The notes below the pieces were generated by a model. The model saw nothing but the letters and a program-made list of their open reading frames with translations, searched no databases and was not told the origin of the DNA. This document shows, one piece after another, positions 47,510-49,761 of a stretch of DNA of 64,000 nt. Source of the stretch: Dimorphilus gyrociliatus (Eukaryota; Animalia; Annelida); NCBI GenBank assembly GCA_904063045.1, contig CAJFCJ010000003.1, forward strand, positions 2,280,504 through 2,344,503, read 5' to 3'. The translations under genes and the position numbers were made by a program. Position 1 is the stretch's first letter, and the number at the start of each line of letters is the position of its first letter.

Positions 47510-49761
<2,252 letters not shown>

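Follow-up and report, generated by a model that had tools for sequence, protein, structure and literature searches.

The window, a stretch of 64,000 nt of genomic DNA from Dimorphilus gyrociliatus, carries on its minus strand a nine-exon gene that, as read from its letters, shows every sequence feature by which a Sec-type large thioredoxin reductase (TrxR) is defined. The coding sequence comprises 1533 nt including the stop codon, which predicts a protein of 510 residues including Sec. Exon joints were taken from transcript contigs and adjusted to GT..AG, and each exon is open in the expected phase. All eight introns are skipped by both contigs, their ends read CT..AC on the plus strand, i.e. 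GT..AG for a minus-strand gene, and their lengths of 48-154 nt fit the median intron of 66 nt in this species (PMC7854359). The coding part of exon 1 (49719..49761, minus strand, as are all following exons) starts with ATG and contains 14 codons and one further base; it is defined by transcript joints, a frame check and an in-frame stop upstream of the ATG. Exon 2 (49198..49564; transcript joints, PDB and Pfam Pyr_redox_2) encodes the FAD-binding GGGSGG sequence and the N-terminal redox centre CVNVGC. Exons 3 (49027..49105), 4 (48910..48969) and 8 (47791..47862) were assigned by transcript joints, frame and colinearity with an ortholog described below (locus L003 for exon 3). The NADPH-binding fold begins in exon 5 (48754..48844), which is placed by transcript joints and frame and is 93% identical in the ortholog, and the NADPH-binding domain occupies exon 6 (48200..48603), with Pfam Pyr_redox and Pyr_redox_2 matches and mouse TrxR2 as its top PDB match. 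The dimerisation domain begins in exon 7 (47963..48151; transcript joints, frame and Pfam), and the coding part of exon 9 (47510..47737), annotated through alignment with mouse TrxR2 (1zdl) and Pfam Pyr_redox_dim, contains dimerisation-domain sequence, the His/Glu motif HPTCAEE, the flexible tail and the TAA stop codon.

All protein searches were run exon by exon. The FAD-binding GxGxxG fold and the first redox centre are found in exon 2, which reads VLGGGSGG, contains CVNVGC and matches both rat TrxR1 and mouse TrxR2 in the PDB with an E-value of about 1e-46 each, marginally better with TrxR1. The NADPH-binding and dimerisation domains are represented by Pyr_redox in exon 6, Pyr_redox_dim in exons 7 and 9 and HPTCAEE in exon 9. 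Mouse TrxR2 is the top solved match of exon 6, and the mouse mitochondrial enzyme (1zdl) is that of exon 9, its SGLEPTVTGC segment being aligned to the tail of the gene. The C-terminal Cys-Sec pair is present in the form TVT-E-C-UGA-S-stop, the alignment to TrxR2 reaching as far as the Cys in front of Sec. The N-terminal stretch ahead of the FAD fold comprises about 26 residues, among them six Arg and two Lys and no Asp or Glu, and by this composition only it looks like a mitochondrial presequence. Together with the best-match identity of single exons, this makes membership of the TrxR2 subgroup likely but does not settle it. The earlier note had proposed a Sec-type thioredoxin reductase at this locus, and every catalytic part of a large TrxR is indeed found.

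A Vps26-like gene (46805-47143, plus strand) and the TrxR gene are convergent, and the final coding exon of the former covers 47027-47143 (EITIFRK...NNTQ, stop). Transcript contigs from two sequencing runs, X2 and X3, pass from the TrxR 3'UTR into this exon and the previous exon of the Vps26-like gene, so the two transcripts overlap tail to tail. On the other side (49800-50310, minus strand), the same contigs continue for ~510 nt beyond 49800, upstream of the TrxR gene and in the direction of the 3' end of a tropomyosin gene (last exon 50381-50731). Either transcription reads through here, or the genes lie so close together that their contigs were merged. Neither operons nor trans-splicing are reported in the genome paper of the species (PMC7854359). 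Within the overlap of the convergent TrxR and Vps26-like 3'UTRs, and downstream of the SECIS element described below, a block of ~160 nt (47190-47355, both strands) that is non-coding on both strands is 83-93% identical to positions 6375-6545 of the ortholog locus L003, compared with 71-81% for coding DNA, in which synonymous sites are saturated, and about 55% for the adjoining spacer. AATAAA signals occur in the block, as do two perfect palindromes, CTCTGTACAGAG and CGTCGACG, and a search of it against Rfam gave no match.

The C-terminal tail and its predicted recoding signal

To our knowledge, the conserved active-site tail of selenium-dependent TrxRs is almost always given as Gly-Cys-Sec-Gly (GCUG). 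Here, the minus strand at the tail reads ACT GAA TGC TGA AGT TAA, and both glycines that flank Cys-Sec in the canonical form are replaced, by Glu and Ser, respectively, as confirmed in transcripts. The tail proper (47510..47524, minus strand), which is identical in the genome and in two transcript contigs, consists of GAA (Glu, 47522-47524), TGC (Cys, 47519-47521), TGA (Sec, 47516-47518), AGT (Ser, 47513-47515) and TAA (47510-47512). These are the residues and the exact coordinates given by the earlier note for a T-E-C-U-S terminus, the same letters now being found in both contigs. Each of the two flanking substitutions is a single G-to-A change, in a genome of ~30% G+C, and the earlier note had for this reason cautioned that an error or polymorphism, starting from GGA and GGT, had to be excluded; the transcript contigs of two studies read GAA and AGT instead.

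The spliced contigs of X2, from a separate study of 2017 and with a depth of 625, and of X3, from another study and with a depth of 137, show 0 differences and 0 indels relative to the genome over 47027-47737, a comparison made on assembled contigs rather than raw reads, in which minor or rare alleles would be hidden. Ten runs contain at least part of the stretch. X2-X5 contain 0.63 of the sampled words, as expected for spliced mRNA of a compact gene, and the DNA run X1, which may be the source of the assembly, contains 1.00 of them. The genome and both transcript assemblies agree on GAA and AGT and likewise on the letters of the SECIS element. Since the contigs equal the genome letter for letter, assembly or sequencing error is excluded, and the tail, predicted to read Glu-Cys-Sec-Ser in the protein, is confirmed as a genuine, expressed natural variant of TrxR.

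A SECIS candidate lies in the 3'UTR, 73 nt past the TAA (47377..47436, minus strand), and was detected by the Rfam model SECIS_1 with 31.3 bits and E=3e-4. This score, seen in a permissive scan of the 3'UTR, falls just under the Rfam gathering score of 35, and a scan of the whole window at gathering thresholds gave no match. The AUGA, apical AAA and UGAU/GA core motifs are intact, a search of the 3'UTR for core motifs and helix returned 47377-47436 as the sole candidate, and the element lies inside the transcript contigs. The textbook SECIS of the earlier note thus stands as a candidate with intact core motifs, at a score below the gathering level. Thermodynamic folding of the 3'UTR is unremarkable (z-score -0.81), so that the evidence for the element comes from conservation and covariation, not from stability. 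In a related species, whose SECIS scores 23.3 bits, none of the 18 predicted pairs is broken, one has changed on both sides (A-U to G-C) and four have changed on one side, and the spacer of ~70 nt between stop codon and SECIS is only 53-57% identical. The maintenance of the pairs while the spacer diverged supports a functional SECIS and argues against UGA as a real stop. In addition, the in-frame UGA sits at the Sec position of homologs, and the same UGA is found in the ortholog and in many relatives.

The ortholog and the range of natural tails

A search with the last exon in a collection clustered at 90% identified a protein (P0151) of the same length, 73 residues, with 77% identity. It is present in four runs, and its DNA was read in three loci from three runs (L003-L005, Logan contigs of SRR23372228, SRR23372216 and SRR23372231), all of which read GAA at the tail. 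On a 42-kb contig, the ortholog has the gene order of the window, tropomyosin - TrxR - Vps26 - NRPS-like, and its nine exons are colinear with those described above, with amino-acid identities of 58-93% and about 76% for the protein overall. Pooled over five ungapped exons, dS is 1.33 (saturated), dN 0.15 and omega 0.11, which indicates that the two sequences come from different species and that the TrxR gene is under purifying selection. The ortholog tail, ACT GAA TGC TGA GGT TAA, encodes T-E-C-U-G. As Glu before Cys is common to both species, it was fixed before the lineages split, and has been inherited and kept. The Ser after Sec, in turn, corresponds to one G-to-A transition (GGT to AGT) that is specific to Dimorphilus gyrociliatus in comparison with the ortholog. 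All TrxR2-like outgroup tails that were read have Gly or Ala after Sec, making Gly the likelier ancestral state at this position.

For a wider survey, tails were counted as proteins stopping at x-C, since protein predictions end at UGA, and the DNA was read past UGA for chosen cases. Among 94 tails from an exhaustive search of representatives at 50% identity, the residue before Cys is Gly in 70, Ser in 18, Ala in three, Asn in two, Asp in one and Glu in none. With a profile search of C-terminal fragments added, 208 other tails gave 158 Gly, 33 Ser, six Ala, five Thr, three Asn, two Glu and one Asp; the two sets overlap in lineage and their figures are rough. About a quarter of the surveyed Sec-type tails thus have a residue other than Gly before Cys, and a few lack the final Gly. 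The two Glu tails belong to the ortholog and to an unrelated metagenomic eukaryote (P0200). Tails read from DNA comprise GCUG (P0001 and P0161, the latter with a SECIS of 35.6 bits), ACUG (P0072, P0003), ACUA (P0167), SCUG (P0025, P0145), NCUG (P0071), DCUS (P0101; L006 1763-1783, L007 1603-1623) and ECUA (P0200; L097-L099, in L097 at 1717-1737). A less biased scan of metagenome contigs returned 32 Sec-type tails, of which 29 are GCUG and one each SCUG, GCUA and SCUS (the last at L054). The variant metagenomic tails are called Sec-type from their Cys-UGA-codon-stop architecture alone, and a SECIS search of these loci gave a match in L014 only, the contigs ending 50-370 nt past the stop or being non-animal, so that the blanks there say nothing for or against a SECIS.

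The combination ECUS was not found elsewhere among the 208 tails or the tails read from DNA, and its elements, an acidic residue before Cys and a Ser after Sec, each occur separately. In the sequences surveyed, the residues flanking Cys-Sec vary more than the GCUG textbook motif implies, with non-GCUG tails as an uncommon, recurring minority. The putative Sec tails of the G-C-U-A and A-C-U-A kinds belong to the metagenomic eukaryotic loci L053 and L011. In assembly GCA_002895965.2 (PIJE02001178.1, locus L002), two TrxR last exons reading LNATVTAC-UGA-G-stop lie on the same strand ~14 kb apart (at about 2400 and about 16570), an arrangement that points to tandem duplication of a TrxR gene with an A-C-U-G tail.

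Probable origin and possible role of the Glu and Ser flanks

The locus is best explained, with good though not full confidence, as an expressed, TXNRD2-like TrxR gene of probable mitochondrial type that would use Sec in the standard relay, its tail being a lineage-specific variant that is tolerated and goes back to G-to-A mutation in an AT-rich genome. UGA at 47516-47518 would be recoded to Sec through the 3'UTR SECIS at 47377-47436. Electrons would then pass from NADPH to FAD and on to the CVNVGC disulfide of one subunit, from there to the selenenylsulfide that Cys and Sec form in the flexible C-terminal tail of the other subunit, and finally to thioredoxin. In the presence of Sec, the flanking positions would matter less, and the substitutions would have been near-neutral, Glu having been fixed before the species split and Ser having arisen later in Dimorphilus gyrociliatus.

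An artefact, or a private polymorphism of the laboratory strain, by which GAA and/or AGT would not be typical of the species, is very unlikely. Each change is a single G-to-A, contigs hide rare variants, and the runs may derive from related cultures, X2 and X3 being 100% identical even in the UTR; nevertheless, transcript assemblies of two studies, at depths of 625 and 137, give the same letters as the genome, and GAA recurs in a different species, in three loci from three runs, so that for Glu this reading is already effectively refuted. For Ser, a polymorphism within the species would still be compatible with assembled contigs. Less credible still is the proposal that the flanks pre-adapt the tail for Sec loss, as in the S/T-C-C-S tails of dipterans, and that the enzyme is an intermediate on the way to a Cys form. 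The terminal Ser does match the last residue of SCCS and TCCS tails, and a natural SCUS exists in a metagenomic eukaryote. However, Cys is preceded by Glu and not by Ser or Thr, the close matches include no relative with a Cys form, and both species have kept the Sec codon, the single codon after it, the stop and the SECIS, with compensatory SECIS changes and an omega of 0.11. ECUG in the related species, a conserved SECIS and purifying selection together mark a lineage that is keeping Sec. From the earlier description of the tail as a natural variant or intermediate relevant to Sec/Cys evolution, the real variant therefore remains, borne out by the tail letters, the SECIS and the transcript contigs, and the intermediate finds no support, with Sec and SECIS retained at an omega of about 0.11; the Ser that had been called insect-like corresponds to one species-specific G-to-A transition in an AT-rich genome. 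The least probable account takes UGA as a true stop, with a protein that would end at T-E-C, lack a redox tail and be inactive toward thioredoxin. The SECIS score below the Rfam gathering threshold would agree with it, but in the alignment with solved TrxR2 the UGA falls exactly on Sec, and UGA-codon-stop and SECIS pairing are conserved next to a diverged spacer. Moreover, all large TrxRs need a second redox centre, for which a lone C-terminal Cys is insufficient, and the single C-terminal Cys of such a protein would be unable to form one.

Adaptive retuning, in which Glu and/or Ser alter the chemistry of Cys-Sec and the tail is selected and not merely tolerated, deserves more weight than these readings and is nonetheless rather unlikely. 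The routes proposed for it are that Ser hydrogen-bonds the selenolate or thiolate, a role that has been suggested for the serines beside the redox pair of the fly Cys enzyme, and that Glu shifts the pKa of the neighbouring Cys or guides the tail electrostatically to a substrate such as mitochondrial thioredoxin. Both species have kept Glu despite saturated synonymous sites, the pattern of an acidic residue before Cys and a small or small polar residue after Sec recurs independently (DCUS, ECUA), and in the Drosophila enzyme flanking serines are credited with stabilising the thiolate (PMC11508645). On the other hand, the argument rests on one species pair, one kept residue is not unusual at a protein identity of 76%, and Ser is absent from the related species, so that Glu and Ser do not form a co-adapted pair there. 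The retention of Glu over a saturated divergence allows a functional role and does not prove one; it could equally mean functional importance as opposed to neutrality, and in a single pair of species with ~76% identical proteins it would be weak evidence of specific selection on this residue. That the Glu and Ser tail retunes thiol/selenol reactivity, substrate choice or resistance to over-oxidation of the selenium enzyme is doubtful, if conceivable, and the tolerated variant is the preferred reading.

Relation to known thioredoxin reductases

The role of the residues that flank the redox pair of the tail has been discussed mainly via the fly Cys enzyme. The tail forms listed in a review are SCCS, TCCS, GCCG and GCUG (PMC11508645), and the open literature that was searched contains no Glu-Cys-Sec, Cys-Sec-Ser, Ser-Cys-Sec, Ala-Cys-Sec, Asp-Cys-Sec or Asn-Cys-Sec tails. 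In the searched literature, Dimorphilus gyrociliatus is not linked with selenoproteins, and its genome paper mentions neither selenium nor thioredoxin (PMC7854359). The concern that ECUS-type tails might already be widespread and characterised is not substantiated, since Glu occurs in two of 208 other tails and none is described in the literature searched. Tails with a residue other than Gly before Cys, about a quarter of the Sec-type tails in the present small survey, and the few without the final Gly are not mentioned there either. The ECUS tail leaves the current view of the enzyme family as it is and adds a verified, expressed gene for an animal enzyme of predicted Sec type in which both flanking glycines are replaced. 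ECUG in the related species separates the two substitutions, and ECUS and ECUG represent natural constructs for testing how the flanks affect Cys-Sec chemistry. If retuning were true, the dinophilid ECUG and ECUS tails would form a natural series with DCUS, SCUS and ECUA, one that would show the purpose of the GCUG glycines and whether Ser flanks aid Sec as they aid Cys.

Compared with mouse TXNRD2 (1zdl, 3dgz), the gene has the same domain order, CVNVGC centre and HPTCAEE motif. The tail context KRSGL(D/E)PTVT-x-C-U-x is that of mammalian TXNRD2, with UGA as the penultimate codon and a 3'UTR SECIS in both, whereas the tail itself is E-C-U-S in the worm and G-C-U-G in mammals, and the putative worm presequence, with about 26 residues ahead of the FAD fold, is short and has no sequence relation to the mammalian one. 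The TrxRs of Drosophila (SCCS) and Anopheles (TCCS) have the large TrxR fold and a C-terminal Ser in common with the worm enzyme (PMC11508645). In contrast to the worm gene, with its Sec codon, SECIS and Glu before Cys, the insects have Cys in place of Sec, Ser or Thr before the first Cys and no SECIS, so that the worm tail is not of the dipteran type. The uncharacterised metagenomic DCUS, SCUS and ECUA tails also combine an acidic residue or Ser before Cys with Ser or Ala after UGA, followed by a stop; their lineages are distant and not animal-like, the last exon being 43-50% identical, and none is ECUS. The ortholog P0151 has Glu before Cys, UGA, one further codon, TAA and a SECIS in common with the gene described here, and differs in its last residue, Gly (GGT) there and Ser (AGT) in Dimorphilus gyrociliatus.
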